A DNA stretch of 64,000 nucleotides, from the NCBI GenBank assembly GCA_026936335.1, contig JAPMXV010000030.1, positions 186,001 through 250,000 of the forward strand, written 5' to 3'. Below the pieces are notes generated by a model, which was not told the origin of the DNA, did not search any database, and saw only the letters and a program-made list of their open reading frames with translations. The DNA comes from Mantamonas sphyraenae STR306 (Eukaryota > Protista > CRuMs). Positions 26,319-49,073 of this stretch are shown here, piece by piece; within the stretch, counting starts at the first letter, position 1; every line of letters begins with the position of its first letter. The position numbers and the translations under genes were made by a program.

Positions 26319-26391
26319 ACGGCGTCGGGAGATGTGGGAGGGAGTGAGATGGATGGAGCGACAGGGGCGCCAGCGAAAGTGAGAGCGGACC

Positions 26392-29341: not shown

Positions 29342-30682
29342 TTATGAGAGTCGTGTTAAAAACACGTCTGCGTTGACGTTGTTCAGGACAAAGGTGGCGA
29401 GCACGAGAACAAGCGAGAAAACACTCCGCACCATTTGCGGTGTGATGGTGGTTCCAAGGAGCTTGAGGCCTGTGTTGCTGCCACGGATGTGGTTGATGGC
29501 TGCTGTGCAGGCCGGAGAACCGAGGTGATGCGTGTGGACCCAACGCTGGCAGAATCGCACACATTCTTGGTGCCGTGAAGTGATCCGACCATACCAGTAG
29601 AGAACGACGAAGATGTGAACAATGGACAAGGTGATTGCGATGTAGAGAGCGTGAATCCTGGTGTTCGTGTGGTCTCGAAATGAGACGAAAAGAACGAGCA
29701 CATACACCAAACCGAAGAACGAACTTAGGAGCTCTGGCACGGTGATCCACTGAAGCTCCACTGAGAGTCTCTCCATGACTTCATGCAGTCCTGCGTGCAT
29801 CGAATGGATGCGGCGGGCACAGGCTTGGTCGTCTTCGTCGACATTCTGTTCCATCTGCGCCACATTCCACTGCAGGAATGATGAGGCTGACTTCTTCGTT
29901 GCGTACAGAACAAAGATCGTTAGAGCAGTAGCCCCTGTTGACAGGAAAGAGGCCAAGACTCCCATAGACAGGTACGCGTACACTATCGGATTGGTTGCCT
30001 GATCCGGTCGCCTTGCGAGACCCTCAGACAGCCAAACGAAACTATCGACCATAGCGTAGCATTGAATGATGACAATGTACCAGAAGGCCAGTTTTGCTGG
30101 TTGCTCAAGGGTCTTCTTGTCGTAGAGAAGGCCGCCACCCCAGAACCGTGTCACGCGGTCCAGGACCTTGATCAACTGAGTTCGAGCAAAGATGTAGGTG
30201 CCAAACATAGTGAGTAGCGTAAAACTTGATGAGATCACAACGCTTGCGCTGCCAGCCATCACGCCAAGCGCGAGGAACACGACCAAAAGAAGGAACGTGG
30301 TTGTCAGCGCAAAAAGCCGCACGATTCCACCGATCGAGCACATGTCCGGAGGCACAAGGTCGCCCATTGAGAAGCCAAACTTGAAGTAGTCAAAGAGCCG
30401 GTACGGGCTCTGCTTGAGGGCTCGCTCGACGCCCGAAACCGGGTTGCGAGAGGATTCTTGGTGACGCGCGATCGCTTGGAGCAGCCCCTTGCGGTCGGCA
30501 GAGGTGATCCACACCATCGTGATGTTCAGAGCGATCATTAAGCGATTCAGCCACGTGTGATCGGTGTTTCCGGAAGCATCCTGTGCCTCGATGTCGTCAA
30601 AGGCCATGTAGTGTTGCGGCATGTTGTCTTGCTCGCCACGGCGCGAGCCCTCGCTCAAATCCGATAGACCGTGTGGAACCAA
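29342..30682 (-). CDS. Gustatory-receptor-like / DUF3537-like 7-TM ion channel (7TMIC superfamily)
   Basis: Seven hydrophobic segments; long amphipathic loop between TM4 and TM5; LYWYGRITSRHQ after TM6; split TM7 AINHIRGSNTGLKLLGTTITPQMVRSVFSLVLVLATFVL. Intronless. Confidence 0.65.
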   Translation of the reverse strand: MVPHGLSDLSEGSRRGEQDNMPQHYMAFDDIEAQDASGNTDHTWLNRLMIALNITMVWITSADRKGLLQAIARHQESSRNPVSGVERALKQSPYRLFDYFKFGFSMGDLVPPDMCSIGGIVRLFALTTTFLLLVVFLALGVMAGSASVVISSSFTLLTMFGTYIFARTQLIKVLDRVTRFWGGGLLYDKKTLEQPAKLAFWYIVIIQCYAMVDSFVWLSEGLARRPDQATNPIVYAYLSMGVLASFLSTGATALTIFVLYATKKSASSFLQWNVAQMEQNVDEDDQACARRIHSMHAGLHEVMERLSVELQWITVPELLSSFFGLVYVLVLFVSFRDHTNTRIHALYIAITLSIVHIFVVLYWYGRITSRHQECVRFCQRWVHTHHLGSPACTAAINHIRGSNTGLKLLGTTITPQMVRSVFSLVLVLATFVLNNVNADVFLTRLS

Positions 30683-30866: not shown

Positions 30867-30919
30867 ATGGCAGCCAAGATGAACCCACGCAGACCCGAGA
30901 CCTTTCCCCAATCCGATTC

Positions 30920-30950
<31 letters not shown>

Positions 30951-33900
30951 AAAGAAGAGAAAGAAGAAGGAGAAGAGGAAGCCTTGCCCTCGCCGCTGAT
31001 TGTGGCGGCGCGACGAGGCGACGTGAACGGGGTGAACGCGGCGCTGAGTGCTGGCGTGGATTCCGACCAACCGGACAAGTTTGGTTGGACGGCGTTGCTC
31101 CACGCAGCAGAGAAGAAGCACGTGTCCTGTGTGGTTGCGCTGCTTGACGCAGGTGCCAGTGTCGACGCCGGCCCTGGCAAACACGGCGCGGGCACAGCGC
31201 TGATCAGAGCAGCGATTCAAGGGGCGACGGCGTGCGTGGAGGCGCTCCTCACGGCAGGCGCAAGTGTGCATGCGCGAGACGATGATGATTGGACGGCGTT
31301 GCATGCAGCATCTGTGAGTGGCAGCGTGGACTGCGTCGAGGCGCTGGTGGCGGCGGGTGCGGATTTGGACGCCCAGTCCTGCAAGGGCATCACCCCGTTG
31401 ATGATGGCTGCACAGAGTGCGACAGACAAGAACGAGTATGAGTACGAGGAGGGTGAGCGTCCAGACGTGCCACTTGGTCATTTGCTGTGTGTGGACGCGT
31501 TGCTAGCTGCCGGAGCCGACGTGCGCGCGTGCTCCGACCAGTATGGGACGGTGCTGCACGTTGTGTCGACACATGGCCACGAAACGTGTTTGCGCAAGCT
31601 GTTGGCTGCTGGGGCAGACCCTGAGCAGCGGAACGCGCATGGTTGCACGGCGTTGCACCGTGCCGTAAAGTGCGAGGACACAGGCTGCCTACAGGCGCTG
31701 GTAGAGGCAGGTGCACAGTTGGAAGCAAAGGAGACGCGTCGCGGGTTTACACCGCTGGCGGTGGCAGCCAACCGGGGCAACGTGGCCGCTGTGAAGCTGT
31801 TGCTGCAGGCAGGAGCCGATGTGCACGCTGTGGGCGAGCATAAACACACAGTGCTGATGCTTGCGGCAGAAAAGGGTCACCGTGAATGTGTGCGTGTGCT
31901 TCTGGACGCTGGTGCAGCTGTCAATCAGGCCACCGACGCGGGCGGGACGCCGCTGCTCGTGGCCGCTCTCCATGGGTACTCGGACGTCATGGAGATGCTT
32001 CTGGCAGCAGGCGCCGACACGCAGGCACGCGACTCTGAACAGTGGACTGTGCTCCACTCGGCCGTGGTTGGCGGCAATGCAGCATGTGTGCGTGCGCTAG
32101 TGGACAGTGGCCGCGTCGACCTGGACGCAGTGACCGAAAAGAGCTGGACTGCGTTGCACAGCGCCGTACGCAACGGCCATGAGGACATGGTGTCCATGTT
32201 GCTGGATGCAGGCGCAGACGCGACGGTGAAAATGATCGAAGGGAACGACGCTCTCATGTTGGCCGCCAAATTCGGAAGAGTCGAGTGCATCCAGCTGCTG
32301 CTGCAAGCAGGCATGGACGTCGACGTACGCGGATTCCGCAACATGACCCCTCTGATTCGTGCGGTGCTGCACGGCCACGTAGAATGTGCACGCGTGCTGT
32401 TGGAGGCAGGCGCAGACGTAAACGCGGCAGACGAGTCGAAACGCACGCCACTGGTGCAGGCCGCGCATGAAGGACACGTCGAGTGCCTGCGTTTGATCCT
32501 ACAGGCAGGCGGTGAGGTGGACCAGCGGTTTGAACACGGTGGAACAGCGCTGCTGGTGGCTGGGCTCGCAGGCAACACCGAGTGTGTTCGCCTGCTCCTG
32601 GAGGCAGGCGCAGACGTGCACGTGCGCGACGACGACGGATGGACGCCGTTGCATTCGTCTGTGATCGGCGGCGATCCTGCGTGCATAGCGCTGCTCGCGG
32701 CCGCTGGCGCAGACGTCAATGCGCGTGACAATCGCCAAGCCACACCGGTGATGCTTGCTTCCGAAGCAGACAACGTCGCAGTGATGCACGCGTTGGTGGA
32801 TCTGGGTGGCGACATACACGCGCAGGACAGCACGGGGCGAACGGCGCTGGTGCAGGCCGCACAGCTCGAGAAACACGCAAATCTGGCCTTTCTGATCGAC
32901 GCAGGAGCAGGTGTGGACTGTTTGATGAGCAACCGCACGACGCCCGTGTTGATGGCCGCTCAAAACGGGCGCGTGGAGGTGTTGCGACTGCTGGTGGAAG
33001 CAGGCGCAAAACTGGACGAACGAACAACCAACGGACGCACAGCACTCATGCAGGCTGCCAAGAACGGACATTCCGCGTGTGTCAAACTCCTGTTGAGCGC
33101 GGGGGTGCAGGTGGACGCGGTGGAAGACATAGGAAGGTCGTCGCTGATGCAGGCGTCCTCGAAAGGCCACGCCGACGTGGTGGCGCTGCTGCTGGAGGCA
33201 GGCGCAGACAGAAATCTGGCAGGTTGCGACGGATGGACGCCGTTGATGCTGGCTGCCAACGGCGGATTTCGAGAGAGTGTGGAGCTGCTTCTGGCGGCGG
33301 GTGCGGATGTGCACGCAGCCAATGTGTTTGGCCGCACGGCGTTGATCCAAGCGGCACAAGGCGTTGGAGACAAGAGTTGCCTGCAGCTGCTTCTGGACGC
33401 TGGTGCCAGGGTGGACGTGGAGGCCGAGGGCGAGTGGCAACCGTTGATTGTGGCCGGCGACTGCGGCAATGCCCAAGGCATAGCGGCCCTTCTGGAAGCA
33501 GGGGCCAATGTGAATGTAGAGCCAGGCCACAGGAGTGCTCTGTTGCAGGCGGCGCACAACGGACACGCAGAGTGTGTAAAGGTTCTGCTGGAAGCTGGAG
33601 CCAGTCTGAAAGGCGCATTCAATGTCACGCCGCTGATGCAAGCGGCACAAGAGGGACATTTGGAGGTGGTCGAGCTGCTTCTGGATGCAGGGGACGATGC
33701 ACACGCCAAGAGCGACCTTGGACGAACGCCGCTGATCCAAGCGGCGCAGAACGGACACACCGACGTGGTGGCCAGGCTTCTCAAGGAAGGCGTGGACGTG
33801 AACGCAAGAACCAACTCGAATCTGACTGCGTTGGTGTCTGCGGCCGAGCGCGGCCACGAGGCGGTGTTGGATTTGCTGCTGGAGGCCGGCGCAGATGTGC

Positions 33901-36887
33901 AGGCTGCAGACGACATCGGATGGACAGCGGCCATGGTGGCGTCCCAAAACGGACACTTGGCTTGTTTGCACAAACTGATCCACGCGGGTGCAGATGTGCA
34001 CAGGGCAAACACGCGCGGGCGCACTGCGTTGATCCAGGCGTGTTCCAATGGCCGTGCTGATTGCTTGCGTGCATTGCTGGATGCTGGGGTGGATGCCACG
34101 CAGGTGGGTGCCGATATTGGCCCCGTGGCGCTTCTGGACGCGGCCAGGCAAGGGCATGAGGAATGTGTGCGTTTGCTGCTGGACGCAGGGGCGCCTGTGA
34201 ATGCGCCCGGGTTGATGAACCGTACGGCGCTGATGAACGCGGTGCACTCGGGAAAAGTCGCCTGCTTGCGAGCGTTGGTGGAGGCCGGAGCCGACGTGCA
34301 CGCAAAGGACAAGTTTGGACGGGACGGAATGAGCGTCGCGTGTGAACTCGGACTTGTGGAGTGCGCAGAGGTTTTGTTGGACGCAGGCGTAGAGGTGGAC
34401 ACAGAGCTCGTGGAAGGCCACACGGGGCTGATGATTGCGTCGCAGCATGGAAACGAGGCCTGTGTGAAGCTGTTTGTGGAGCGCGGGGCCGATGTGAACA
34501 GGCCCGGGCCGTTTGAGTTGACGGCGTTGATTCCAGCGGCGCAGAACGGCCACGGCGCATGTGTGCGTGTGTTGCTGGAGGCAGGGGCGAATGTGAACGC
34601 CATGTCGGACAGCAAGCGCAGTGCGCTGGTGCAAGCGTCGCAGAACGGACACGTGGAGTGTGTGCGCATGCTGCTGGACGCAGGTGCAGATGTGGAACGC
34701 GCAGACACGGTGGGGTGGACGTCGCTGATGCAGGCGGCCGTGCTCGGACACATAGAGTGTGTGCGCATGTTGCTGGACGCAGGGGCGGATCCAAACACAC
34801 GCGAGGACGTGGACAGGACGGCGCTGCTGATGGCGTCGGAACAGGGGTTTGAAGAGATCGTGGATGTTTTGCTGCGTGCAGGTGCGCAGGCGGATCTGAG
34901 CGACCGCAGCGGATGGTCGCCGTTGATGATGGCCGCAGACAAAGGCCACACCAGGTGCGTGGCACTGCTCTTGGGCGCAGAGGCATCGGTGCAGCAGAGC
35001 GACGAACACGGATGGACGGCACTGATGCAGGCGGCGCAAGAGGGACACGCAGAGTGTGTGCAGCTGCTGTTGGACGCAGGGGCACACGTAAACGTGGAGG
35101 CGAACGACGGACGCACGGCGCTGATCCAGGCGGCGCAGAACGGACACGATTCCTGCGTGCGTGCGCTGGCAAAGGGACATGCAGAGTTGGATCACCAGGG
35201 GCCGCACGGGCTGACGGCGTTGGCAGTGGCTGCACACAACGGGCATCCTGCGTGTGCGGCGGTGTTGATCGAGGCAGGAGCAGATGTGACACGCGAAGCG
35301 GAAGGCGGGTGGACGGCGCTGTCGATTGCAGCCAAGATGGGCCACACAGAGTGTGTGGAAGCGCTGGTGGCGGCCGGGGCGGACGTGAACCAGGAAGACG
35401 ACAGCGGGTGGACGTCGCTGATTCAAGCGTGCGGAAGCGGACATGACGCATGTGCGCGTGTGTTGCTGGACGCAGGCGCAGACGTGCATCACGTGACCCA
35501 TTCGGCACGAACGGCGCTGATGCAGGCGGCGCAGTGCGGCAGTGTGCCATGTGTGCACATGCTGCTGGACGCCGGCGCGGAGCTGGAGGTAGTGACAGAG
35601 AACGGGTGCACAGCTCTGTTGGTGGCGTCACGGATGGGCCAACACGAGTGTTTGAAAGCATTGGCGGACGCAGGCGCAAACGTGCACGTGGTGGACAGTG
35701 CAGGATGGACTGCGATTCAGCACGTGGCGCACAGCGGCAAGGTGGAGAGTGTGCAGGTGTTGCTGGACGCGGGCGTGGACGTGAACAACGCCAACGTGGC
35801 CGGGTGGACGGGACTGATGCTTGCCGCGCAGGAGGGCCATGCAGATTGTGTGGGGCTGCTCATTCAGGCAGGCGCAGAGGTGGATGTGATGTCGGACAAC
35901 CACCGCACGGCGTTGGTGCAGGCGGCACAGAACGGCCACACAGAGTGTGTGCAGCTGCTGTTGGGCGCAGGTGCAAAGGCGGATCTGGCCATGGGCGACG
36001 GGCGCTCTGCGCTGTCGATGGCCGCACACAACGGCGAGCTGGCGTGTGTGGAGCTGCTGTTGGGTGCAGGGGCAGATGCGAACCAAAAGACAAAACGAGG
36101 ACGCACGCCGCTGGCGCATGCGGCGTTGGGCGGCCATGAGAGCTGTGTGCGTGTGCTGTTGGACGCAGGGGCAGAGGTGGACAGCGCAGGCGAGGATCGC
36201 AAGACAGCGCTGGTCATGGCGTCGATGGGAGGGCACACAGAGGTTGTGAGGATGCTGTTGGAGGCAGGGGCGAATGTGAACACGGATTGCGGAGACGGGG
36301 GGCTCCCTGTGATGCTGGCGGCGATGAAGGGCCATGCAGAGTGTTTGCAGGTGCTGATCGATGCAGGCGGAGATGTGCACACGGCGGCGGTGGACGGGTG
36401 GACGCCGCTGACAATGGCGGCCGAGAACGGAGAGGTGGAGTGTGTGCGCAGACTGTTGGTGGCAGGGGCGTTTGTGGACGCAAGGACGAGCGGGCAGAGG
36501 ACGCCGTTGATCCAAGCCGCGCAGGAGGGCCATTTGTTGTGTGTGTTGCTGCTGTTGGAGGCAGGGGCGAATGTGGATGCGGCGGAGGAGGATGGGTGGA
36601 GCGCGCTGATGATGGCGGCGCAGAACGGGCATGCAGAGGTGGTGGCGGAGCTGGTGGAGGCCGGGGTGGATGTGGATGCACAGAATGAGCAGGGCTGGAC
36701 CGCGTTGATGATGGCCGCGCATGTGGGGGATATCGCGTGTGTGAGGGTGTTGTTGGGCGGAGGGGCGGATGTGCATGTGCAGGGGAGGGATGGGGAGGTT
36801 GCGGTGGGGGGTGCGGCGGGATTGGGGCATGCTGGGGTGGTGGAGGCGTTGGTGGAGGCGGGGGCGGATAGGAATGTGAGGGGTTGA
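30867..36887 (+). CDS. Giant ankyrin-repeat protein (~2,000 aa, roughly 58-60 repeats, no other domain)
   Basis: Continuous 33-aa repeats of the form GxTALxxAAxxGHxECVxxLLxAGAxV after an acidic N-terminus; intronless. Confidence 0.95.
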
Positions 36888-37035
36888 TGGGGATGGTGGT
36901 GATTAAGAGTGGTCAATGTAAACAGAGCACGTTCACGATGCGCTTGGTGATCCAGCGGCAATGTTTTCCAGGACACGCCCCTGCCTTGCGGGCCTGCCGA
37001 GGAATACACTGCAAGTCTTGCCTGGGCTACGGTCG

Positions 37036-38049
37036 ATGGCTGTTGAGGAGATGCAGGAGGCTGTCCAGGAACGCGAGCAGTTCCCCGCGTCCGTGGGCTT
37101 GTGGTCGGCTGGCGGCACCGCTACATTCAGCGGGATCGTCCTGTTGCACTCTTCTCTCTTTCAGGGGTTACAGGCCTTTGCCTCGTCGTATGTTCTATTG
37201 GGTGCCGTATCGAGCGTGCTTGTCACAAGAAAGGCTGAGGAAGTGGACAAGATCGTGCAGGGGTTGGCGGAGGTGATCAACACCGCCGACGCCATGTCTT
37301 TCAGCGCCTCCTTGGTGGCAAGCAGAGCTGCTCTGGGTCCACGGCATTCTTTATCAAGTGACAGTGAGCAGCTGATGAACGAGATGCACAAGAGGTTGCA
37401 TAAATCGCTGTCGAGTGTGGTGAGAGAACGCTTGTTGCGTCGCCAGCGAGCTGGAGGAGAGGATATAGGTGCTCTGTTGCCAAAGCCTGTGCTCGACACA
37501 TATGCAGGCAAGAGCAGCAAAGAGGCAACAGCTCGTGTTGAGGAACTCTGTTCAACGAGCACGACGAACGAAGGTGATGCGATCCGGGAGGTATGCGACG
37601 CTGCGGCGGAACACGTTCACAACTATGCTTGCCTGCATCTGGGGATGGCAGCAGCAGTACAAGCGCACTACCTTGCACATGCGCGACACCCTGAGCCCCC
37701 TACGCGCGTTCCTAAGCCGCTTCGGAACTTGTTGAACACGCTTTCCAGCAGCACGCGATCCAAGGACACGACACACCTGCCTTCGCTTGCGCGCAGCTTT
37801 GTTGACTTGTACGATACTTGCAGGGCACTCGAGGCGGACGTGAGGGAGAGTAAGGACTTGGGGAAACTGCACGAAGTCGGCGCTGCGTTGGTGCGTGTCC
37901 GCGATATCCACCACGATTTGTTGGTTGGACAACCAGCAAGGGTGCTCATTGAAGGAGCCACTGAGAGGAAAAAGCAGGCATTGCTGGACGCTGATCGCAT
38001 GCGCAGGAAATGTGCGATGGTGATCGCCACGGCGGAAGCAAACAAATGA
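37036..38049 (+). CDS. Hypothetical protein A: N-terminal 2-TM hairpin + helical domain
   Basis: Intronless ORF; two hydrophobic segments (VGLWSAGGTATFSGIVLL; AFASSYVLLGAVSSVLV); paralogous to the next ORF. Confidence 0.65.
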   Translation: MAVEEMQEAVQEREQFPASVGLWSAGGTATFSGIVLLHSSLFQGLQAFASSYVLLGAVSSVLVTRKAEEVDKIVQGLAEVINTADAMSFSASLVASRAALGPRHSLSSDSEQLMNEMHKRLHKSLSSVVRERLLRRQRAGGEDIGALLPKPVLDTYAGKSSKEATARVEELCSTSTTNEGDAIREVCDAAAEHVHNYACLHLGMAAAVQAHYLAHARHPEPPTRVPKPLRNLLNTLSSSTRSKDTTHLPSLARSFVDLYDTCRALEADVRESKDLGKLHEVGAALVRVRDIHHDLLVGQPARVLIEGATERKKQALLDADRMRRKCAMVIATAEANK

Positions 38050-39272
38050 CTTCTTCCTCCGAGGAAACGCAGTTGGAAGAAGATGATGCCATCCATATCA
38101 TCCCGTTGCAGATAGAGGTTGCCAAGGAGTTGAAGAGAAAGGTTTATGCACAGCACAGGCAGGTGCTGAAGGAGACACGCGAGTCAACACAGAAATGGGG
38201 AGGGCTGGCAGCTGCGGCGGCGTATGTGGCAACGCACAAGCAAAAGACTGTGGTCCAAGGGTTGGTGTCCGTAGCCACTGGGCTGGCTGTTTGGACAGGA
38301 CTGCGTGTGTGGAAAATGAGGGAGTTGGAACGGACGCGCAGGGAAGCGGAGGGCTGCCAGCGAATCCGCGCACATTCCATGGTGCTGATGGTGGATCTCA
38401 GTGTGTTGGCAAGCGATTGGACACCAGCTGCGGAGAGGAAGAAGGCTTTGGGGAACATTCGGGAGAGTTGGTGGGGAGATGATTCCCACGACTCTGCAGG
38501 GGTTGGAGAGAGTGGGAAACTCACGGCACAGTTTGCTCGATTCCGTGGCAGCAAGTGGTGGGTGGATGACACACCACACGGGAAACCAGGATTGGACCAA
38601 GTGAAGGCTGTTGAGGCGTCGATCATTGAACGCTGTAAGCTTTCCCCGGTTGAGCTGACAGAGGCAGAGCGGGAGGCAGTTCTGAAACACGCACAGTCTA
38701 GGACACTCGACTTGGTGGTGGCTGGTGACTGGATGGGCTCCGCACGACCCTTGTGCCACAAGGCAGCGGCCGTGATCAGGAAACAAGCTGGAAAACACTT
38801 GACCACCGCGCTCATGTACCAGCTGCAGGCTAAGGAGCTGGAGACGATGTACAGGACTTCCATGAACTCTCCGCTTATAGAAAGGGTGACGTCGTTCCAT
38901 TCGAAGGAGCTGCAGCCCGTGCAGGAGCTGCTGGAAGTGTCACTGCTCTTTGGCGAACACGCCACTCACAAACTCATTCAGCTCAGCTCGACGGCGTCCC
39001 AGGACTTTACCCTGCTCTATGACTTGTGCGTCAAGGTGGAGAGTCAGTTCAGCAAGGGCAGGAGTTGGGAGGACTTTTGGAAGGCTGAGAAGAAAGCGAG
39101 GGAGCTGGCGATCATTCATCGCGAGTTTTCGCACCGAGCTCCGGTCTCCACAGAGGACCCGCAGGAGGTGGCAAGCTCTGTGAGGAAGCTGGACAGGGAA
39201 CATGTCCGCTCCACGCTTACAGTGGCTGAATGGTGGAACGTCTCGGAGGACATGGACACGGAGGAAACGTGA
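38046..39272 (+). CDS. Hypothetical protein B: paralog of A, 2-TM + helical domain; ATG overlaps A's stop (ATGA)
   Basis: WGGLAAAAAYVA and VVQGLVSVATGLAVWTGL hydrophobic segments; shared motifs with A (FTLLYDLC vs FVDLYDTC; IIHREF vs DIHHDL). Confidence 0.65.
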   Translation: MTSSSEETQLEEDDAIHIIPLQIEVAKELKRKVYAQHRQVLKETRESTQKWGGLAAAAAYVATHKQKTVVQGLVSVATGLAVWTGLRVWKMRELERTRREAEGCQRIRAHSMVLMVDLSVLASDWTPAAERKKALGNIRESWWGDDSHDSAGVGESGKLTAQFARFRGSKWWVDDTPHGKPGLDQVKAVEASIIERCKLSPVELTEAEREAVLKHAQSRTLDLVVAGDWMGSARPLCHKAAAVIRKQAGKHLTTALMYQLQAKELETMYRTSMNSPLIERVTSFHSKELQPVQELLEVSLLFGEHATHKLIQLSSTASQDFTLLYDLCVKVESQFSKGRSWEDFWKAEKKARELAIIHREFSHRAPVSTEDPQEVASSVRKLDREHVRSTLTVAEWWNVSEDMDTEET

Positions 39273-39316
39273 ACTGAACGCGACGCGTGCGCCAACACAT
39301 CGACACGCACAGCCTC

Positions 39317-42067
39317 ATGAGCACATTGGACAGGAAGCGCGTGCGGAATGTGCGTGTGGGTCGTCAGGAGAATGAAGAGAATGAAATCGGTGGCAATGAC
39401 GAGTTGCAGGTGCCGGCGTTTGGGAGGGAAACGTCAAAGGCGGAGGTGGTGGAAAAGGTGCTCTCACTGGCCCGGGATGTCAGTGATGAGGTGCAACGTG
39501 GTCAGGATGAGGAGCGCGAGTTGGTGATGACACTGGTGAAGGAGTGTCTGGGCGATGGGGTGCGTTTTGGGGTGCACGGGAGCAAGGAACACGGAACACA
39601 CGTCCAGGGAGTGTCAGATGAGGACATATACGTGTACATGGGGGGGCAAGGACCTGCTGATGGTGCAGATACTGGGTTGGTGGAGGTGGTGGCTGTAGAC
39701 GGGCCACGGCTGGAAGGTGGCGGGCTGCCGAAGGAAACGCGATTGCTGAACACGGTGGACGGCGGCTGGTCGACGGCAGAGGAGGCAGTGCGACGCATGC
39801 GGGAGGATGTTTTGCCTTACTTGAAGGAGAAACTGCCGAACAAGAAAGTGCAGATGGGCCGGCGATGTCTGAAGGTTGAGGGAGTGGCACAAGACTACGA
39901 CTTGATCCCTGGAGCAGAGGTGGAGATCGAGATGGAGAGTGGAGAGAAAGAGAAGGCGGTGGTGCTACCGTATGGGAAGCCAGAAGTGCACGGATGGGAG
40001 CTGTACCGCCTGGACTACTATGAACGAGTGTTCACAGAGTTTGCGGATGCCCACGGTGAACGGGACGGGTTCATCGGAGTGCGTGGTGTGTGTCAGGTGG
40101 TGAAGTTTGTGGTGCGGATGTGGGAGAAGATGAAGCATCCGGGTGGGCTGGCAAACGGGGCGTTTATCGAGGCAGCTGTGCGGCATGTGGTGGCGGCAGC
40201 AGAGGCGAATGGTGAGAACGGTGTAGGGACAGTGGAGGTTGTGGAGCGGGTGGCTGGTCTGTTGGAGAAGGGATGGTTTGAGGATGAGGTGTCTGGAGAG
40301 GAGTGGAAGGTGAAGGTGAAGGATGGGGCGGTGTTGGAGGCGAGTCGGTTTTGGGAATGTGCGAAGATGACATACCAGGGGCTGGGAGCGCTGGGGGTGG
40401 ATTCCTTGCGGTACTGGCCTGATGACACAAGTGGAGTGCATGTGGCGGCGCGGTTTGGCAATGTGGGGCAGCTGGAAAGCTTGCTGGAAGCGTGTGGAAG
40501 CGACACGGAACGGCGGAAGCTTGTGAACGAAGCGGACAGGAATGGGTGGACACCGTTAGTACATGCGTCACAACACGGGAAGGTGGGTTGTGCTGAAGTG
40601 CTGATCAGCGCAGGTGCTGATGTGAACGGGTTGCAGTTGAATGATGAGCTAGCAGTGTCACCTCTCGCCGCGTCCCTGTACTGCGCCGGAAGGTGTTTGG
40701 ATGTGCTGCTGGCAGTGGGGGGAGTGGATGTGGATGCACAGTTGCCAATTGGGGCAACCCCACTGATGTTTGCATCTGTACTTGGAAACACAGACGCTGT
40801 GAAGAAGTTGATCGCTGCCGGGGCTTCAGTGGACAAGCACGGGAAGGATGAAGGGACTGCGTTGATTCAGGCAGCCACAAACGGACACGTGGGGTGCGTG
40901 ACGGCGCTGATTGAGGCAGGGGCGGATGTGGATGCTGCAGATGGGAAAGGGTGGTCTGCGTTGATCATGGCAGCACAGGGTGGACACGTGGAGTGCGTGG
41001 CAGCGCTGATTGACGCAGGGGCAGATGTGAATGCTGCGGCCGGGGAGGGATGGAAAGCGTTGATTGTTGCTTCACTCAACGGACACGTGAAGTGCGTAGC
41101 AGCGCTGATTGAGGCAGGGGCGGATGTAGAAACTGTGACTGAGGGAGGACTGACTGCATTGATCATTGCAGCACACACCGGGCACTTGGAGTGCGTGACA
41201 GCGCTGATTGAGGCCGGGGCGGAGGTAGAAACTGTGACTGAGGGAGGACGAACTGCGTTGATCATTGCAGCACACACCGGGCACTTGGAGTGCGTGACAG
41301 CGCTGATTGAGGCAGGAGCAGATGTGAATGCTGCGAGTGAGGGAGGAAGGACTGCGTTGATTCAGGCAGCACAGCAAGGACACGTGGAGTGCGTGGCTGC
41401 GCTGATTGAGGCAGGCGCGAATGTGAATGCTGCTACTGAGGATGGATTGACCGCGTTGATCATTGCAGCAGGGAACGGACACGTGGAGTGCGCGACAGCG
41501 CTGATTGAGACAGGGGCGGATGTGAGTGCTGCGATTGAGGGAGGACAGACTGCATTTATCATTGCAGCACAGCAAGGACACGTGGAGTGCGTGGCAGCGC
41601 TGATTGAGGCCGGGGCGGATGCAAACACTGCGACTGAGGATGGGTTGACCGTGTTGATCATGGCAGTACAGAAGGGACACGACGCCATTGTCTCTCTCCT
41701 CCTGTCCTCAGGTGCAGATCCAAAGATGCCTGGCCCAATGGGCTTCACCGCACTTCACTTTGCTGCCCTCGTTGGCCACGCGAGCACCATCAAACTTCTC
41801 CTCTCCAATGGCGCAGACCCAACAGCATCTGCCGCCGGTCTCACCCCCCTACACGTCGCAACCGCCTCCAACCACCCCGAATGTGCCGCCCTCCTCCGCC
41901 CCGACCCCACCAACCCCAACAACTGGTCCTCCATCAACCTCACCACCGCTGACCTCAAAGCCCTCCGTCGTGGCGGCATCGACGGCCTCCTCATGCACCT
42001 CGAGCTCTCCAACCAACACGCCAAGATCAAGCAAGTCAACACCCTCGTTACCCAAAACAACTGGTGA
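39317..42067 (+). CDS. cGAS/DncV-like (CD-NTase/SMODS-type) nucleotidyltransferase fused to ~15 ankyrin repeats
   Basis: Pol-beta fold motif VHGSKEHGTHVQGVSDEDIYV (GS at 39578-39583, DxD at 39617-39625); GRRCLKV..DYDLIPG (third Asp ~39899); helical lobe VCQVVKF..GAFIEAAV. Ankyrin repeats from ~40420. Confidence 0.8.
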   Translation: MSTLDRKRVRNVRVGRQENEENEIGGNDELQVPAFGRETSKAEVVEKVLSLARDVSDEVQRGQDEERELVMTLVKECLGDGVRFGVHGSKEHGTHVQGVSDEDIYVYMGGQGPADGADTGLVEVVAVDGPRLEGGGLPKETRLLNTVDGGWSTAEEAVRRMREDVLPYLKEKLPNKKVQMGRRCLKVEGVAQDYDLIPGAEVEIEMESGEKEKAVVLPYGKPEVHGWELYRLDYYERVFTEFADAHGERDGFIGVRGVCQVVKFVVRMWEKMKHPGGLANGAFIEAAVRHVVAAAEANGENGVGTVEVVERVAGLLEKGWFEDEVSGEEWKVKVKDGAVLEASRFWECAKMTYQGLGALGVDSLRYWPDDTSGVHVAARFGNVGQLESLLEACGSDTERRKLVNEADRNGWTPLVHASQHGKVGCAEVLISAGADVNGLQLNDELAVSPLAASLYCAGRCLDVLLAVGGVDVDAQLPIGATPLMFASVLGNTDAVKKLIAAGASVDKHGKDEGTALIQAATNGHVGCVTALIEAGADVDAADGKGWSALIMAAQGGHVECVAALIDAGADVNAAAGEGWKALIVASLNGHVKCVAALIEAGADVETVTEGGLTALIIAAHTGHLECVTALIEAGAEVETVTEGGRTALIIAAHTGHLECVTALIEAGADVNAASEGGRTALIQAAQQGHVECVAALIEAGANVNAATEDGLTALIIAAGNGHVECATALIETGADVSAAIEGGQTAFIIAAQQGHVECVAALIEAGADANTATEDGLTVLIMAVQKGHDAIVSLLLSSGADPKMPGPMGFTALHFAALVGHASTIKLLLSNGADPTASAAGLTPLHVATASNHPECAALLRPDPTNPNNWSSINLTTADLKALRRGGIDGLLMHLELSNQHAKIKQVNTLVTQNNW
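40850..41690 (+). repeat. Near-identical 99-bp tandem repeats encoding ankyrin units
   Basis: For example 41102-41200 vs 41201-41299 differ at only a handful of bases; about 8 units. Confidence 0.9.
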
Positions 42068-42100
42068 CCAATACACTCTTTTCACCCCCACCCACTCACC

Positions 42101-45100
42101 TCACCACCCCCACTGCCTCTCCTCACTCTTCCTCACCGCCGCCGACCCTGCCTGCGTCACACTCTCCGTAAACACCGCGTGCACCTTGATCCACGGCGTC
42201 ACCCTCGTCCTGTTCCTCGACGCCACCACCGCCATCACCACCACACTCACCGTCATCGCACACACAAACCCCAGCCCCAACGCCACCTCTGCCCCGCTCC
42301 CCTCCACCGTCCCATCCAGCAGCATCCACGACACCACCGACGACCACAACGCCACCCCGAGCAGCCCCAGCCGCAGCACATTCAACCACGCCAGCGCAGA
42401 CGGACGCCTCAGCGCAAGCACCACCATCGCCACACACACCGCCGTGTGTGCCGTCTGAAACACAACCACATACTGCCCTCCGCCAAAGTACTCCACCACC
42501 GCCGCAAGCACAAACTTCAGCATCCCTCCACCCACAATCGTCGACGTCCGGAACCGCATGTCCAGCTTCCAGCTCCGCTTCTCGCTCCACACAATCCCCG
42601 TCAGCACTGCCATCGGCATATACACCAGAATGGCCAAGAACGCCACGCTCGCCAGCGCCAGATGTGTCCCCTCCCAGCACACCATCGTCGGCTCTGCATC
42701 CAGCACCGCCACGCCATTCCCGCCCCACGTGCACACCACTCCGCGCAGCAGTCCACGCGACACGGGCAACAACAGCACCGCGTTCACTTCTGCCAGCCCA
42801 TTCCACGTGTCCACCTCCCGTCCACACACACGGTACCGCCCGTGCAGCTCCAGCAGCGCACGCAACACAAACGCCGCCGTCACTGCAATCCAAAACGTCG
42901 CCCCCAGCGGCACATGCACATCAAACGCCACCAAATCCAGCGCAAACACGCCCAGCGCCTGCCGCACCTCCACACTCCACCTCGGCGTCGTCTCCACCGT
43001 CAGCTGCATCAGCTGCGCCACCTCCACACACACCGCCCCCAGCGCAGCCCAATTCGACACCGACCGCCACTTCACACGCCGCACAGGCAGCCGTATCACA
43101 CGGTCCAGCTCGCAGAACCGCACCGCCACAAGCACCGCCGTGCCCAGCAGCAGAAAGAACAGCAGCGTGATCACAAACGACAGCATCGGCCCCTGCCCAC
43201 TCAACAACACAAGCGCAATCGCAAGCGCCACAAACACCACATCCATCCCCACCAGCGTCTGTCTGCTCGGCGTACGCCCCAGAAACCAAAACGGGATCAC
43301 CAGCGACCGCGGACGGTGGTCGTCTGTGTGCACCGTCAGCTGTGGCGGAAGCGTAGCCATCTCCACAGGCCGTTTCACCATGGCATTGTGCCGCAGATCC
43401 AGCTCCGTCAACGCAAGGTGCTCGTTGCTACGGATCCCAGCCACCAGTTCCCGCACAGCCTGCCCGTCCAGCGCATTGTGCGACAGATCCAACGACCGCA
43501 GACTGCGGTTGTGCTCCAGACTCTTGGCCAGCACACGCGCACCCGTTGCACGGATCTCGTTGTGAGCAAGCACAAGCTCTCGCAGACGCTGCGTCACCTT
43601 GAGCGCGTGCTGAAAGTGCTCCATCGCCTCGCACGTCAGCCTGTTGTGTGACAGATCCACCTGCGTCAGGCTTCCGCTGTCCGAAAAGATGTCCTTCAGC
43701 ACCGTTGCGCTTGCGTCCCCGAGCAGGTTTCCGCTCAGGTTCAGCGTACGCACGCTCTTGTTTGTACGCAGCACATCCGCAAGCAGCGACAGACGCACCA
43801 TGTTTGTGTGCTTCGTGTGCCGCAGCGCACCTCGCTCCGTCTCCATACGACGCATCCGCGCGCGTTCCAACGCATCCAACCCCGCCTGCATCGCCACTCC
43901 CTTCACTCCAGCCCCTTCCTCCGACCCATCCGTCGTCGTTTCCACCTCTCCGTCCTCCCCAGCCGTCCGATGCGCAGCCAGCCGCTCCTGCGCCTGCGAA
44001 ATGCTCGTCCGCCGCATGTCCAGCCCAGCCATCGCCGCTGCAAGCGACGAGTCCATCCGATCGCGCGTCCCCGTACGTGTGGCACGCGCTCGTGGACGCT
44101 CTCGATCGCGTCCACGCCGCCGCCCCGGTCTTCCTCTCGCCTCCACTTCCTCTCCTTTTCCCTCTTTCCCCTCCTCCCCGTCTTCTCCTACCTCCTCCTC
44201 TTCCTCCTCCTCCTCCCCTTCCTTCTCCTTCCCGCCCCGTACCTCCACGCTGTAGTCCAAATCGGTCACTTCGCCACGTCGCAGACTGCCCACATCGACA
44301 ATCTCCCCTGGACCCAACACCACCTTTTCCAGACACGTGTGCTCAGCCACCGCCTTGCCCAGTGCACGCAGCTCTGTGCATGCCTCCAACAGACGCAGGC
44401 CAACCATCCTCAGTTCCACCAGCGACTGGTTCGCCTCCAACGCCGTGGCCAGCACACCACACGCAAGCGGCCCAAAGTTGGTGTGCGACACATCCAAATG
44501 CGTCACTGCACACATCCCACTCGCCAGGAAGCCAAACAGTCCGTGTGCTTTGTCTCCGTGCAGACACTCGCCACGCACAGACACACGCGTCACCTGCGGA
44601 CTGTTTGCAAGCACCTCGGCCAGAAACGTCATCTCGTGCACCGTCATCACGCCCTCCTCGTCACGTATGTCGAATGCGTCTGTGTCCCTGCGCACCAACC
44701 CAAGCACATTCAGCCACACGCTGTCCACACGCACCTGCTCCAGCGTGTTGGACGCAAGCAGGCCACGCGCAAGCTCACATGCAATGTCTGCGCTCATGCC
44801 AGGGTTCCCGCCCACGTCCAAGCGCACCAGCGCCGTCTGCTCCGCCACCACCGCACACACCTGCCTGAGCTGCTTGTGTGTCAGCCCAAGCTGAGCCAAC
44901 CCAAGCTCACGCAAAGGCAGCGCAGACACAGCTGTGCACAGCTCCGACACATTCCGTGTGCTCAGTGCGTTGTAGCCCACGTCCAGCGTGTGCAGCGATT
45001 CGCACATCTCCACCCCGCTCACAAGCACCTCTCCAGACGCCTCGCCCAGCTCATTGTGGTCCACACGCAGGCTCTCCAGGCGGCCTCTGTGCAGCAGTTG

Positions 45101-48100
45101 CCGCAGATGCGTCACCAGTCCTCCGTCGCTGATGCTGTTCTTGCCCAGATCCACATGGGTGATGTGCGTCTGGTCCTGCAGCGATTCCAGCAGCACCAGC
45201 GCGCCCACGTCGCCCACGCCGTTCTCACGCAGACGCACTTGCTTCAAGTAGGCACACGCAGGCGCCAGGGCGGCCACAAAAACGCAGCCGCGGTCGCCCA
45301 GCTCCGCGCCGTCCAGCACAATCTCGTCCGACAGACTGTTGACAATCTGCGCCACAGGGATCGGCACGCGATCCGACGTCAGATACAGCGCATCCACCTT
45401 GCACTTGCGTGCAGCCAGCAGCTGGCCGGCCGTGTGTGCCGCGTCCAGCCCAAATGGGTTGTCGTGCACGTCCAACACACGCAACGCACGCACGCCCGCC
45501 ACACTCTGCGCCAGACGCACCATGCCCTTGTTTTCAATCTCGTTGCCTGCAAGATACACCTCGTGCAGTCTATCACACGTCTGCAACACGAGCGCAATCG
45601 CTTCGGCCCCCTTGTCTCGCAGCAGGTTGTTGCTCAGGTCCAACTTGGTCACCGTCTCGTTGTGGAACAGGGCGCCTGCAAGCAGCCTTGCGCTCTGGTA
45701 GTCCACAAAGTTGTCCTTCAGACGCACCGTGTGCACCTTTGTGCCTCCTTCCCCGCTCAGCACACGTGCGAGCATGGTCACCTCGGCCGCATTCACGTCC
45801 AGTGCCGTCCAGTCCAGCACACCACCCTTGACCTGTGTCGACGTGTGCAACGCCTGCAGGTTGATTTGCACCGACATGCGCAGCTGCAGCAGCGACCTGT
45901 TTTGCAGCAGCGATTGCGAAAGCGCAATCCCCGTCGCAAGGCCCAGGTCCATCCCGCTCAGGTCCAGAAGCTGCAACATGGCATTGTCGCCCATTGCCTG
46001 GCCAATCACCTGTCCGCCCGAATCGTTCAGTAGGTTGTTGCTCAGATCCAGCGCAACCAGCGTGCTGTTCTCTCTCAGCAGTTCCGCCACGTGCGCCGCA
46101 CCCACACTCGTGATTTGGTTGTTCGCCAGCACCAGCGTGTGTACAGACGCACACGTTTTTTCACACACCCACCACCACCGCAAGGTCTGCGTTGTGCACA
46201 CTCGTGCCGCTCAGGTCCACCACAGGCGACGCCCCCGAACGCCACGCCGCCGGCGTCACGTCGCAGTTCAGCGACACAAGCTCCAACGTACTGTTGCGTT
46301 CCACACACTGCTTCCACGCAAGGCCCACCTCGTCGCTGCGACACCGCGGGTTGTTGCGCAGAATCACCCTCCGTGTCACTGTGTTGGACTCCATCGCATG
46401 CGCCAATGCAACCAGCCCGCCCTCGTGGATGTCGTTGTGGCTCAGGTCCACAGACAACAGCGCCAGTTGGTTGTCCGCCAGCATCGTCGCAAGCACCTGT
46501 GCACCGCGGTCGTCCAGCCGGCATCCCGCCATCTTCAGACCGTTCACCGCGTGCAGATTCCCCATGCGCAGCAGACCACACAAGAACGCCACCTCGTTGG
46601 CACGTATCTTTTCGGGGCAAAACACATCCAGAGGCTGCGGCTTTGTCAGGCCACGCAGGAACGCAAGGTCGTAGTCTGCCTTCCACGAAACCAGCCGCAC
46701 CGACGTCTTCTGGCCCAGCTCACATCCCAGCAACCACGCAAGTCCTTCGCTCACCTTGTGGCACCCTCCCAGGTGCACTTCTGTCAGCGTGTAGTTGTTT
46801 GCCAGCGCACGCACCAGCTCGTGGCCCAGGTGGTCGTCCACCACCGCCTCGCTCCCGTCCGTATTGTACAATCCGGCCACCGCCTCGGCACCCAGGTCCA
46901 GCTCTGTGGTGCTGTTGCTGGCCACGTCTGCCACCGCTGCCTCCAAGTATCCGTCACTGTGCTCCTGCTTCGGCCCGCTCAGCGTAATCTCAAACAGTTT
47001 CGGCCGCAGTTCGCCAAACTGCCGCAACTGCCGCTGCAACTCATGCTCCAATTGCCGCTGCTTCTTTTCCAGCTCTTCCAGCGACCCGCTGCTCGCGTCC
47101 ATGTGACGCCCCAGCTTCCCATGCACGTGTCGCAGCAGTGCAGGGAACGAGTCGTGCGCATACTCGTTCTGCTTGAGCTCAATCACCAGCGGACGGCGCA
47201 CTACTTCGTCCGTGTCCCGTCGTTCTGCTGCCCCATGCGATCTCTGTACACTCGACGATCGCTTTGCGGCCACGCTCGCTCCTCGCCTCGGCGGCGACCG
47301 TTGTCCTCCCTCCCCGCTCACGTCACTCCGGTCGCTTCTGTCGCTCCGATCGCTTCCGTGAGACAACACCATGTCCAGCGTGGCCGACGGCGGCGGCGCC
47401 CCGGGACTCTTCAACCCGTGAGCACTCGGAGGCGGCGGTTTGCTGATCAGCGACGCTTTGCGACGTGCCTGCTGCTTCCGCATCGTCACCACCTTGGCCG
47501 ACGACACAGCCTGCAACGGTGACCGTGGCTCAGGCACACCCATTGCCTGTGCTTGCAGGTGGCTGCTGTTGCCTCCTCCTGCAGCCAGTGTCTTGCGGCG
47601 TCCTGGCGACTGCAGCCCATCCATCCCTGCCCCTGCGCCGCCCACATCCCTGTGCGACGCACTGCGTGTCAGGTTCTGCTTCCGCTGCATCATCATGTCC
47701 TTGATGTCCTTGGCCGTCTTGACATTGCGCAGCACAGACGGCAGGCTCGGCGGGGGCGGACGTGCAAGTCCTCCAGCAGACGCCACGCTGCTGCTGCCTG
47801 CGTTGCTGCTTGCATGCGACGAGGATGCACGTCGCAGACTTGTGCGTCCCTGAGGCAAAAGGTTCTCGTCCAGGCTCTGGGTGGGCATCAGCAGGTCTGG
47901 AATCGGCGTGCTTGCCTCCCGTTTGCTGCTGAACGGATTGTCCGCCTCGCTGCGACGTGTTGCAGGCGTGCTCTCGCCCGTCTCTCCACCTTCCCTGCTT
48001 CCCCGCGGACTGAACCGCTTGGGCGCCATCATCATGGGTGACACCGAACGCGCAGACGTCTCTGTGGGCGCCTGGTCGTCGTCGCTCGGCGCAGAGACCG

Positions 48101-48965: not shown

Positions 48966-49073
48966 TCGACACGCGCAGATTCCTTTGTCTCCCATCGTGC
49001 AACTCAAAACACACGCTGTGCTTCATTCATTCCGCAATCCACACGTGCCCCCCTGTGTCCTCCCCGTTCTCTC

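Follow-up and report, generated by a model that had tools for sequence, protein, structure and literature searches.

A candidate CdnE-like nucleotidyltransferase fused to ankyrin repeats in the genome of the protist Mantamonas sphyraenae

A run of four co-oriented genes

Here we describe a cluster of genes in a stretch of 64,000 nucleotides (hereafter, the window) of contig JAPMXV010000030.1 of the free-living protist Mantamonas sphyraenae. The published assembly of this species comprises 25.06 Mb in 78 contigs, with 59.19% GC (PMC10492846), and the genome searched in the present work counts 25,061,354 bases in 78 contigs. Four open reading frames, all of them on the plus strand, were found at the positions that an earlier note on this DNA had given, followed by the end of a convergent gene:

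30867..36887, plus strand: ORF1, 2006 aa; an acidic N-terminus, then about 60 ankyrin repeats
37036..38049, plus strand: ORF A, 337 aa, an orphan
38046..38049, plus strand: ATGA junction, the stop of A sharing bases with a possible start of B
38046..39272, plus strand: ORF B, 408 aa, an orphan
39317..42067, plus strand: ORF4, 916 aa; a predicted CD-NTase domain, then an ankyrin array, in one uninterrupted ORF
42068..42100, no strand: spacer of 33 nt from the stop of ORF4 to the stop of the convergent gene

Given these ATGs, the successive gaps are indeed of 148, -4 and 44 nt, as had been claimed. Earlier in-frame ATGs exist for both orphans: the one at 36961 would extend A to 362 aa and reduce its distance from ORF1 to 73 nt, and the one at 38010 would bring the gap between A and B to -40 nt. 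The convergent neighbour is an LRR gene (42101-45994, minus strand), and the spacer that separates it from ORF4 can be compared with a median stop-to-stop gap of 54 nt for convergent pairs in a 324-kb sample of the genome. The sign of the GC skew flips at this same spacer. The neighbourhood, which also includes an Ion_trans+EF-hand channel, AIR9, Med26, Serinc, OGT and a kinase, places ORF4 in the nucleus of a protist with a compact, GC-rich genome.

The cluster had previously been read as an operon-like, perhaps polycistronic, unit, with the caution that in so compact a genome close spacing is weak evidence, and it is with the caution that the gap statistics agree. They come from 324 kb of the genome, where genes modelled by codon usage gave 85 co-oriented neighbour pairs, and are rough, as introns counted as intergenic gaps may inflate them. 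Among these pairs, the gap is of at most 150 nt in 39% and at most 50 nt in 26%, and 11% overlap; two further co-oriented pairs carry exact ATGA junctions. Furthermore, an A precedes 27% of the TGA stops, which is the expectation from base composition. The ATGA junction was therefore rejected as a sign of translational coupling, since such stops occur at the base-composition rate and are present at other junctions. The three spacing frequencies multiplied give about 1% and, the genome being taken to encode about nine thousand proteins, dozens of such runs are predicted. The spacing of ORF1, A, B and ORF4 is thus not beyond chance, small gaps, overlaps and ATGA junctions being common genome-wide, and it gives the operon reading no support. 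Around starts and stops, no compositional signal was found besides a general excess of G.

The nucleotidyltransferase domain and the ankyrin array of ORF4

The following elements were located within ORF4:

39434..40396, plus strand: CdnE-like CD-NTase domain (aa 40-360), from profile, ESM Atlas and model matches
39578..39625, plus strand: catalytic motif G88-S89 ... T94 ... S100-D101-E102-D103, aligned to the invariant G, S, T, S, D and D columns of 75 cyclases
39899..39901, plus strand: third catalytic carboxylate, D195, in YDLIPG, aligned to a 99%-conserved Asp (ADVVPC)
40430..41896, plus strand: ankyrin array of about 15 repeats, from Pfam and a motif count
40854..41681, plus strand: 8.4 tandem units of 99 bp, near-identical ankyrin repeats (Tandem Repeats Finder, 79% matches)

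That ORF4 encodes a nucleotidyltransferase had been proposed from its motifs, and profile matches bear this out and sharpen it to a CdnE-like CD-NTase. PADLOC returned three weak, collinear Cyclase matches (E 4e-4, 6e-3 and 0.017), the best NCBIfam match of the domain, also weak, was CBASS_cyclase_b, and the top ten results of an ESM Atlas feature search were all SMODS/CBASS cyclases (0.94, with 174-182 shared features). In hhalign comparisons, ORF4 aligned with a 15-sequence cyclase profile at E 0.0034 over about 177 collinear columns and with a 75-sequence profile at E 8e-4 over about 180, the probabilities being of 9-24%. The score of 33.5 contrasts with 14.6±2.6 (maximum 24.3) for 100 shuffled sequences and 14.1±2.8 (maximum 25.3) for 65 natural proteins taken from this genome, i.e., a z of about 7 against both kinds of control.

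The identity to known cyclases is of 14-22%. The Pfam SMODS, NTP_transf_2 and Polbeta models gave no match to the domain even at E 10, and none of the curated Pfam CD-NTase models (SMODS PF18144, Mab-21, OAS1_C, DncV-like) matched it above threshold. An exhaustive phmmer search with the domain against 1.84 billion representative proteins yielded no match, the same program against PDB sequences only chance esterase matches, and tblastn against plasmids only a chance match. Across the genome, neither PF18144 nor HMMER with the cyclase profile found anything, and the search of the genome with the domain itself returned only the query, which is therefore single-copy.

Regarding structure, the fold looked for in a CD-NTase is bilobal, with a long spine helix connecting the NTase core to a helical lobe on the C-terminal side. 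The single-sequence AlphaFold model of the domain was unusable (pLDDT 37). An alignment-guided model (pLDDT 69, pTM 0.65) matched CdnE (Foldseek E 5e-7, TM 0.56-0.60, VIA Z 14.6), cGAS and DncV being the next fold matches, with Z of 13-14.6 across all three; as this model was built on the cyclase alignment, it does not constitute independent evidence.

The GS, DxD and D motifs pointed out in the earlier note correspond to G88-S89, D101-x-D103 and D195, which align with invariant catalytic residues of the cyclases and make up the Pol-beta-type signature (hG[GS], [DE]x[DE] in the strand that follows, and a third carboxylate on a later one). Altogether, 16 of the 41 family-conserved columns are kept, every catalytic one among them, and several further family-invariant residues (T94, H246, K263, R267 and E285) are also retained. 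From these matches, the N-terminal domain of ORF4 can be identified as a true, very diverged homologue of the CBASS-type, CdnE-like CD-NTases, its closest cyclase group appearing to be the CdnE-like PADLOC 00788/00789, of bacterial and archaeal origin.

The domain is followed by the ankyrin array, whose 99-bp units are most variable at positions 2, 4, 6, 11, 14 and 15 in a per-position analysis, that is, mainly at canonical binding-surface positions. ORF1 is, as had been described, an ankyrin protein of about 60 repeats, with motifs that recur at multiples of 33 between aa 73 and 1943 and with Pfam Ank families as its only domains; the genome has more than 174 ankyrin loci, of which ORF1 is one. 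The nearest genomic relative of the ORF4 array is an ORF on another contig, C70 (52-55% identity, versus 43-53% for ORF1), and since the repeats of ORF4 are closer to that ORF, ORF1 was rejected as a dedicated partner sensor. Judging by sequence similarity, the ankyrins of ORF4 were drawn from a hugely expanded host ankyrin family.

The neighbouring proteins and the possible readings of the locus

Each of the two orphans carries a pair of segments that deserve attention:

37090..37224, plus strand: segment pair of A (aa 19-37 and 45-63), Gly/Ala/Ser-rich and moderately hydrophobic; a putative hairpin
38196..38309, plus strand: segment pair of B (aa 51-63 and 68-88), weakly hydrophobic

Of the label of 2-TM proteins given previously to A and B, what stands is the N-proximal hydrophobic pair, followed in both by a long soluble part. 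The segments themselves are marginal. Those of A reach Kyte-Doolittle values of 1.28 and 1.67, with summed insertion energies of about +3.8 and +3.7 kcal/mol, and the best window of B reaches 1.45 and +4.3 kcal/mol, its first segment staying below 1.2 (energies on the Hessa scale). At least two windows at or above 1.2 are found in 35 of the 112 predicted genes here (31%), and the first transmembrane segment of the bacterial 2TM effectors has values of 1.7-3.0.

The codon score of A is positive but low. No match to A or B was obtained with Pfam, PADLOC or NCBIfam, nor any homologue in word-indexed searches; the ESM Atlas search with B gave no usable match, and paralogue searches of the genome returned only the queries. 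Neither protein contains a recognisable nucleotide-sensing domain or shows similarity by hhalign to the 2TM effector profile (E 0.7 and 0.75). A and B share an F..LYD.C motif and a similar layout; their similarity is not significant by BLASTP (E 0.26) or local alignment (z -0.5), the global alignment giving a z of 2.55 (8 of 500 shuffles). As the resemblance is limited to motif and layout, the proposal of tandem paralogues is unproven and was set aside. The prediction of an A+B complex scored 0.00, with the fold of the partners uncertain, and speaks neither for nor against an interaction. Both proteins are lineage-specific, and the hydrophobicity of their putative N-terminal hairpins is only marginal.

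The explanation that we favour, and regard as probable, is that ORF4 encodes a diverged, ankyrin-fused CD-NTase, most likely active, to which ORF1, A and B need not belong. Its retained motifs suggest that ORF4 would be an active synthase of a nucleotide second messenger and, by analogy with the ligand-gated cGAS, cGLR and OAS, this activity would probably be controlled by a ligand of the ankyrin groove. The adjacency and orientation of ORF1, A and B, and the ATGA, would be ordinary for this genome.

A functional link of ORF4 to its neighbours has a small but appreciable probability. The earlier note had gone further, in proposing a module made of sensor, synthase and pore effector, and for this no support was found, A and B being orphans unlike the CBASS 2TM effectors and ORF1 one among many ankyrin loci. 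In its more developed form, which we consider unlikely, the four genes would constitute a eukaryotic type-I-CBASS-like module where an ankyrin-gated cyclase makes the nucleotide signal that switches on the hairpin proteins next to it; A and B may be non-homologous replacements of Cap15-type 2TM effectors, the genes may be co-expressed, perhaps as one transcript, and ORF1 may be an extra sensor. The cyclase is genuine and closest to a subfamily in which an N-terminal 2TM effector of about 200 aa lies directly downstream in 11 of the 15 loci of the nearest bacterial relatives, so the architectural resemblance is not far-fetched. Moreover, A, B and ORF4 overlap or abut in series, so that the only CD-NTase of the genome lies directly downstream of two proteins with an N-terminal hydrophobic hairpin and a long soluble part; the genome has one copy each of A, B and the NTase domain, all three being specific to this lineage. 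Consistent with this reading, no unlinked receptor was detected in the genome, either Cap15-like, with the 2TM-effector profile, or with the STING_LBD and SAVED profiles, these last searches being run without a positive control.

However, A and B are located upstream of the cyclase and not downstream, and their hydrophobic segments are of a kind common among the genes of this region. In type I CBASS the cyclase stands beside a recognised effector, and here the adjoining proteins gave nothing with PADLOC, no similarity to the effector profile and no domain able to sense nucleotides; their mutual paralogy is not significant, no homologue was found for either, and the spacing and ATGA are those of the genome at large. 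That a eukaryote kept or rebuilt a type-I-CBASS-like unit, with an ankyrin-gated CdnE-like cyclase signalling to two adjacent membrane-hairpin proteins of unrelated sequence in an abortive-infection-like response, and with co-expression from overlapping or shared transcripts, is unlikely. Should A and B prove to be effectors, a CBASS-like module would for the first time be seen as a gene cluster in a eukaryote; were the module reading true as a whole, a deep-branching protist would carry the sensor, synthase and effector of an immune module side by side in its genome.

A rather improbable reading takes the NTase domain for a relic, repurposed or inactive, such as a MiD51-like pseudoenzyme or a scaffold, ORF4 being then an ankyrin adaptor that produces no second messenger. 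Such a fate would fit the extreme divergence from the cyclases (14-22% identity), the change of 25 of the 41 family-conserved columns, including Y90K, N92H and K270E, an insertion after the DxD strand, about 40 residues long and of low complexity, and the presence of MiD51 among the fold matches of the model. Nevertheless, the three metal-binding carboxylates, the G-S loop, T94, H246, K263, R267 and E285 are all conserved, and the retention of catalytic and family-invariant residues is not expected once catalysis has been lost.

We give very little credit to the idea that a domain that is not an NTase resembles the cyclases through a motif matched by chance: the silence of Pfam and phmmer and an hhalign probability of only 9-24% speak for it, but PADLOC, ESM Atlas, NCBIfam and hhalign are four independent lines leading to one family, the score lies about 7 SD above shuffled and natural controls, and the collinear alignment of 180 columns places every catalytic residue. 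Equally hard to sustain is a recent foreign island, whether a giant-virus insertion or an entire defence locus transferred from bacteria, since, although the ORFs lack introns, run closely packed in one direction and include ankyrin genes and orphans, and the relatives of the cyclase are bacterial and archaeal only, no viral hallmark or mobile-element gene occurs within the window, the divergence of the cyclase is far too great for a recent transfer, the GC content (59-64%) and coding-strand G excess equal those of the flanking host genes, the same-strand block extends past the cluster, and the repeats of ORF4 and ORF1 are part of a host-wide family.

Relation to known CD-NTase systems

CD-NTases connect bacterial CBASS with the cGAS/cGLR and OAS immunity of animals. 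The known eukaryotic lineages of these enzymes are cGLR, OAS and the small eSMODS group, and the CRuMs, to which M. sphyraenae belongs, branch near the base of Amorphea.

The system to which ORF4 can best be related is type I CBASS of bacteria and archaea (CdnE-like oligonucleotide cyclase; PADLOC PDLC00788/00789/00794; Pfam PF26305+PF18144; Cap15-like “2TM” effector), whose NTase domain is homologous to its own. The GS-x4-T-x5-SDxD spacing is the same, the third Asp and the H, K..R and FxE motifs are shared, the nearest solved folds of the alignment-guided ORF4 model are CdnE enzymes, and in both cases a protein with an N-terminal hydrophobic hairpin adjoins the cyclase. ORF4 differs in its low identity and the absence of any HMMER-level match, in its fused ankyrin repeats, about 15 in number, and in being housed in a eukaryotic nucleus. 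In turn, A and B differ from the Cap15-like effectors in being upstream, 1.7-2 times larger and much less hydrophobic, with no detectable relation to them.

Among eukaryotic proteins, eSMODS are CD-NTases with SMODS (PF18144) as top Pfam match together with PF01909, nested in the bacterial clade D and present in Amoebozoa, choanoflagellates, Ancyromonadida and a sponge (Culbertson and Levin 2023, PMC10732462); neither ankyrin nor CRuMs appears in that paper (PMC10732462). Like them, ORF4 would be a eukaryotic CD-NTase nearer to bacterial cyclases than to cGAS or OAS, probably acquired by transfer from bacteria. Unlike them, it matches neither of the two Pfam models, its nearest profiles and folds being CdnE-like, and it combines a CRuMs host with an ankyrin array. 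A literature search found no paper linking Mantamonas or ankyrin fusions with CD-NTases. ORF4 would represent a fourth kind of eukaryotic CD-NTase, CdnE-like and with a CRuMs host, and joins a cyclase to a variable ankyrin array in a new architecture. The standard domain models fail to see so diverged a sequence, which indicates that surveys based on Pfam or HMMER undercount the CD-NTases of eukaryotes.

With animal cGAS/cGLR and OAS, ORF4 shares the predicted CD-NTase fold (cGAS Z 13-14, with the alignment-guided model) and, by analogy, the logic of a ligand-gated synthase of nucleotide signals, although it carries no Mab21 or OAS1_C signature. Whereas cGAS and OAS sense the ligand by the surface of the NTase itself, ORF4 bears a fused repeat array. 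RNase L senses the product of OAS with ankyrin repeats, so that ankyrins can be receptors of nucleotide signals; those of ORF4 may serve for trigger sensing, for product binding or as a mere scaffold, and the re-wiring that may have brought a bacterial cyclase under a repeat-type sensor of eukaryotes can be tested on this protein.

A nucleotidyltransferase domain in ORF4

Four ORFs on the plus strand, read in an earlier note from the sequence alone as an operon-like, CBASS-resembling cluster, lie where that note had placed them and with the gaps it had reported, i.e., 148, -4 (ATGA) and 44 nt for ORF1/A, A/B and B/ORF4:

30867-36887, plus strand: ORF1, pure ankyrin, about 60 repeats
37036-38049, plus strand: A, orphan, alternative in-frame ATG upstream at 36961
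38046-39272, plus strand: B, orphan, alternative in-frame ATG upstream at 38010
39317-42067, plus strand: ORF4, ankyrins from near residue 372

With the earlier ATGs of A and B, the first two gaps become 73 and -40 nt.

Before residue ~372, ORF4 carries no Pfam domain. Its N-terminal domain matched nothing in Pfam even at E 10, in PDB sequences, or in 1.84 billion representative proteins searched with phmmer, and Pfam SMODS had no match across the whole genome; a single-sequence fold prediction was unusable (pLDDT 37). Three weaker sources agree, albeit weakly, on a cyclase: PADLOC (three collinear "Cyclase" matches, E 4e-4, 6e-3 and 0.017), NCBIfam (CBASS_cyclase_b ranking first, E 0.015) and the ESM Atlas, where the best ten feature matches are all SMODS/CBASS cyclase clusters (0.94, 174-182 shared features).

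Candidate cyclases were gathered from GTDB genomes (20 loci) with a degenerate DNA pattern of G-S-Y-x3-T-x5-S-D-V-D-I-V, which we take to be the cyclase motif and whose spacing is identical in ORF4. PADLOC confirmed an oligonucleotide cyclase in nine of ten motif proteins tested, mostly with PDLC00788/00789/00794, the same models weakly matched by ORF4. Against a 15-sequence cyclase profile the ORF4 domain gave an hhalign E of 0.0034; when homologues were added and filtered to 75 diverse sequences, E fell to 8e-4 and the score was 33.5, with 180 columns aligned collinearly. Shuffling the domain 100 times gave scores of 14.6±2.6 (maximum 24.3); its reversed sequence scored 9.1, and 65 natural proteins of the same genome 14.1±2.8 (maximum 25.3). 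Sixteen of the 41 columns conserved at 90% or more in the cyclase family are kept: G88, S89, T94, S100, D101, D103, L169, D195, G226, H246, G251, K263, R267, F283, E285 and W330. The top natural control, an ORF of this genome (L012:7753-8814; 57 columns, E 0.012), is probably noise.

An AlphaFold model computed with the cyclase alignment (pLDDT 69, pTM 0.65) has CdnE enzymes as its nearest solved structures (Foldseek best 7x4a, E 5e-7; TM 0.56-0.60 for 7x4a, 6wt9 and 7x4f; VIA Z 14.6 and 14.3), followed by cGAS, CdnC and DncV (Z 13-14 for cGAS and DncV); since it was built on that alignment and is hence not independent, it indicates consistency rather than proof. Altogether, the N-terminal domain is very probably a CdnE-like CD-NTase that has diverged but kept its active site intact, and the nucleotidyltransferase call of the earlier note is upheld by the profile score and by the retention of G88 and S89, D101/D103 and D195. 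The domain is single-copy in the genome, the searches covering 78 contigs with 25,061,354 bases in all; for Mantamonas sphyraenae, a FALCON assembly of 25.06 Mb in 78 contigs at 59.19% GC has been published (PMC10492846).

The ankyrin fusion and its possible role

As read from its sequence, ORF4 is a nuclear gene that joins a conserved CD-NTase active site to a variable array of ankyrins. The genome contains at least 174 matches to this array, many of them in tandem groups of ORFs that mostly consist of ankyrins alone (loci L024-L027 among them):

contig C70, ~145-167 kb: tandem ankyrin cluster
contig C67, ~249-260 kb: tandem ankyrin cluster
contig C51, ~207-223 kb: tandem ankyrin cluster

The nearest relative of the ORF4 repeats is an ORF on C70 (52-55% identity, against 43-53% for ORF1), and because ankyrins are so abundant and the C70 ORF is nearer, the presence of ORF1 beside ORF4 is unremarkable. 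ORF4 contains seven near-identical repeats of 33 residues (72-89% nucleotide identity), and the differences between them fall mainly on unit positions 2, 4, 6, 11, 14 and 15. Four of these positions (4, 6, 14 and 15) belong to the canonical binding surface of ankyrins; such variation would be compatible with a binding module, yet is typical of ankyrins generally.

The product of the enzyme would be a nucleotide second messenger, and synthesis may be gated by a protein or another ligand that binds in the ankyrin groove. By analogy with RNase L, whose ankyrins bind nucleotide product, those of ORF4 might instead bind the product itself.

The eukaryotic CD-NTase superfamilies distinguished by Culbertson and Levin are cGLR, OAS and eSMODS, the last of which is identified through the Pfam models SMODS and PF01909 and nests in bacterial clade D (PMC10732462). 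Unlike eSMODS, ORF4 matches neither Pfam model and looks CdnE-like. Neither CRuMs nor ankyrins are mentioned in that paper, and our literature searches found none tying CD-NTases to ankyrin fusions or to Mantamonas.

Bacterial CBASS and the orphans A and B

In 11 of 15 complete loci with the cyclase motif, a ~200-aa protein with an N-terminal 2TM region comes next after the cyclase, at a distance of -1 to +7 nt; the eleven form one family, and all four members tested were labelled "2TM" CBASS effectors by PADLOC. The nearest relatives of ORF4 are thus cyclases of type I CBASS that have Cap15-like effectors as partners, and this made the module proposed in the earlier note a reasonable idea. 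The same pair, a PDLC00788 cyclase and a 2TM effector, occurs in Actinomycetota, Bacillota, Spirochaetota, Saccharimonadales and, as a type I CBASS pair, in the haloarchaea Halorubrum trueperi (L031) and Halobium salinum (L042). Two proteins of Candidatus Poribacteria (L037:955-1962 and L045:7266-8000) carry a GSY..T.....SDVDIV motif and may constitute a separate nucleotidyltransferase family; the former matched no PADLOC cyclase model.

The likeness of A and B to such effectors does not hold: comparison with the effector profile revealed no similarity (E 0.7 and 0.75), they lie upstream of ORF4 whereas the effectors of those eleven loci lie downstream of the cyclase, and they are much larger and far less hydrophobic. 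The effector profile found nothing in the rest of the genome, nor did the STING_LBD and SAVED profiles, both searched without a positive control. A and B had no family match in Pfam, PADLOC or NCBIfam, no match in homologue searches, no ESM Atlas neighbour and no paralogue in their own genome. Their mutual similarity is not significant (BLASTP E 0.26; z -0.5 for the local and 2.55 for the global alignment), and they have no more in common than a layout and the motif F..LYD.C. As for their "2-TM" label, the putative hydrophobic hairpins are marginal: Kyte-Doolittle values are 1.28/1.67 in A and 1.45 in B at its best window, and insertion energies sum to around +4 kcal/mol. Of 112 genes sampled, 35 reach at least 1.2 in two or more windows. 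That A and B are effectors of ORF4, as adjacency and a weak architectural echo, and these alone, would suggest, seems unlikely.

Gene packing

The window (~60% GC) contains eukaryotic genes for an Ion_trans+EF-hand channel, AIR9/SH3, an IQ protein, a Med26/TFIIS-domain protein, Serinc, an OGT-type GT41 and a protein kinase. Because a first greedy ORF call chose several antisense artefacts, a codon log-odds model was trained on 324 kb of this genome. One such artefact is a 799-aa ORF at 24426-26822 (minus), which overlies the real Med26/TFIIS-domain gene at 24768-26318 (plus). Spurious long antisense ORFs are frequent at this GC content.

Among 85 co-oriented neighbour pairs called with this model the median gap is 243 nt, and gaps are ≤150 nt in 39%, ≤50 nt in 26% and overlaps in 11%, a short-gap class that introns may inflate; two further pairs share the exact ATGA junction. 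TGA makes up 83% of stops in the window and loci L004-L029 of this genome, where AATGAA overlaps 9 of 127 stops (~3 expected) and is, over all positions, ~2.5x over-represented; an adenine precedes 27% of TGA stops, as base composition predicts. Gaps of ≤150, ≤0 and ≤50 nt would jointly occur at ~1%, and therefore, with some nine thousand proteins, in dozens of runs. Given these statistics, the junction, orientation and spacing that had been taken as operon-like are common in this genome and carry little weight as evidence.

The codon model splits the window into two convergent blocks of same-strand genes, ~24.7-42.07 kb (plus, ending at 42067) and 42.1-64 kb (minus, beginning at 42101), which include:

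29342-30622, minus strand: sole minus-strand call within the plus block, low codon score (35 for 426 aa), no Pfam match
42101-48995, minus strand: giant RI-type LRR protein (1297+ aa) and a 944-aa ORF without Pfam match, convergent to ORF4

ORF4 and the LRR gene lie 33 nt apart, stop to stop, the median for convergent genes being 54 nt. The blocks look like long directional gene clusters; coding-strand G excess is strong in both (skew 0.2-0.4) and continues through intergenic DNA.
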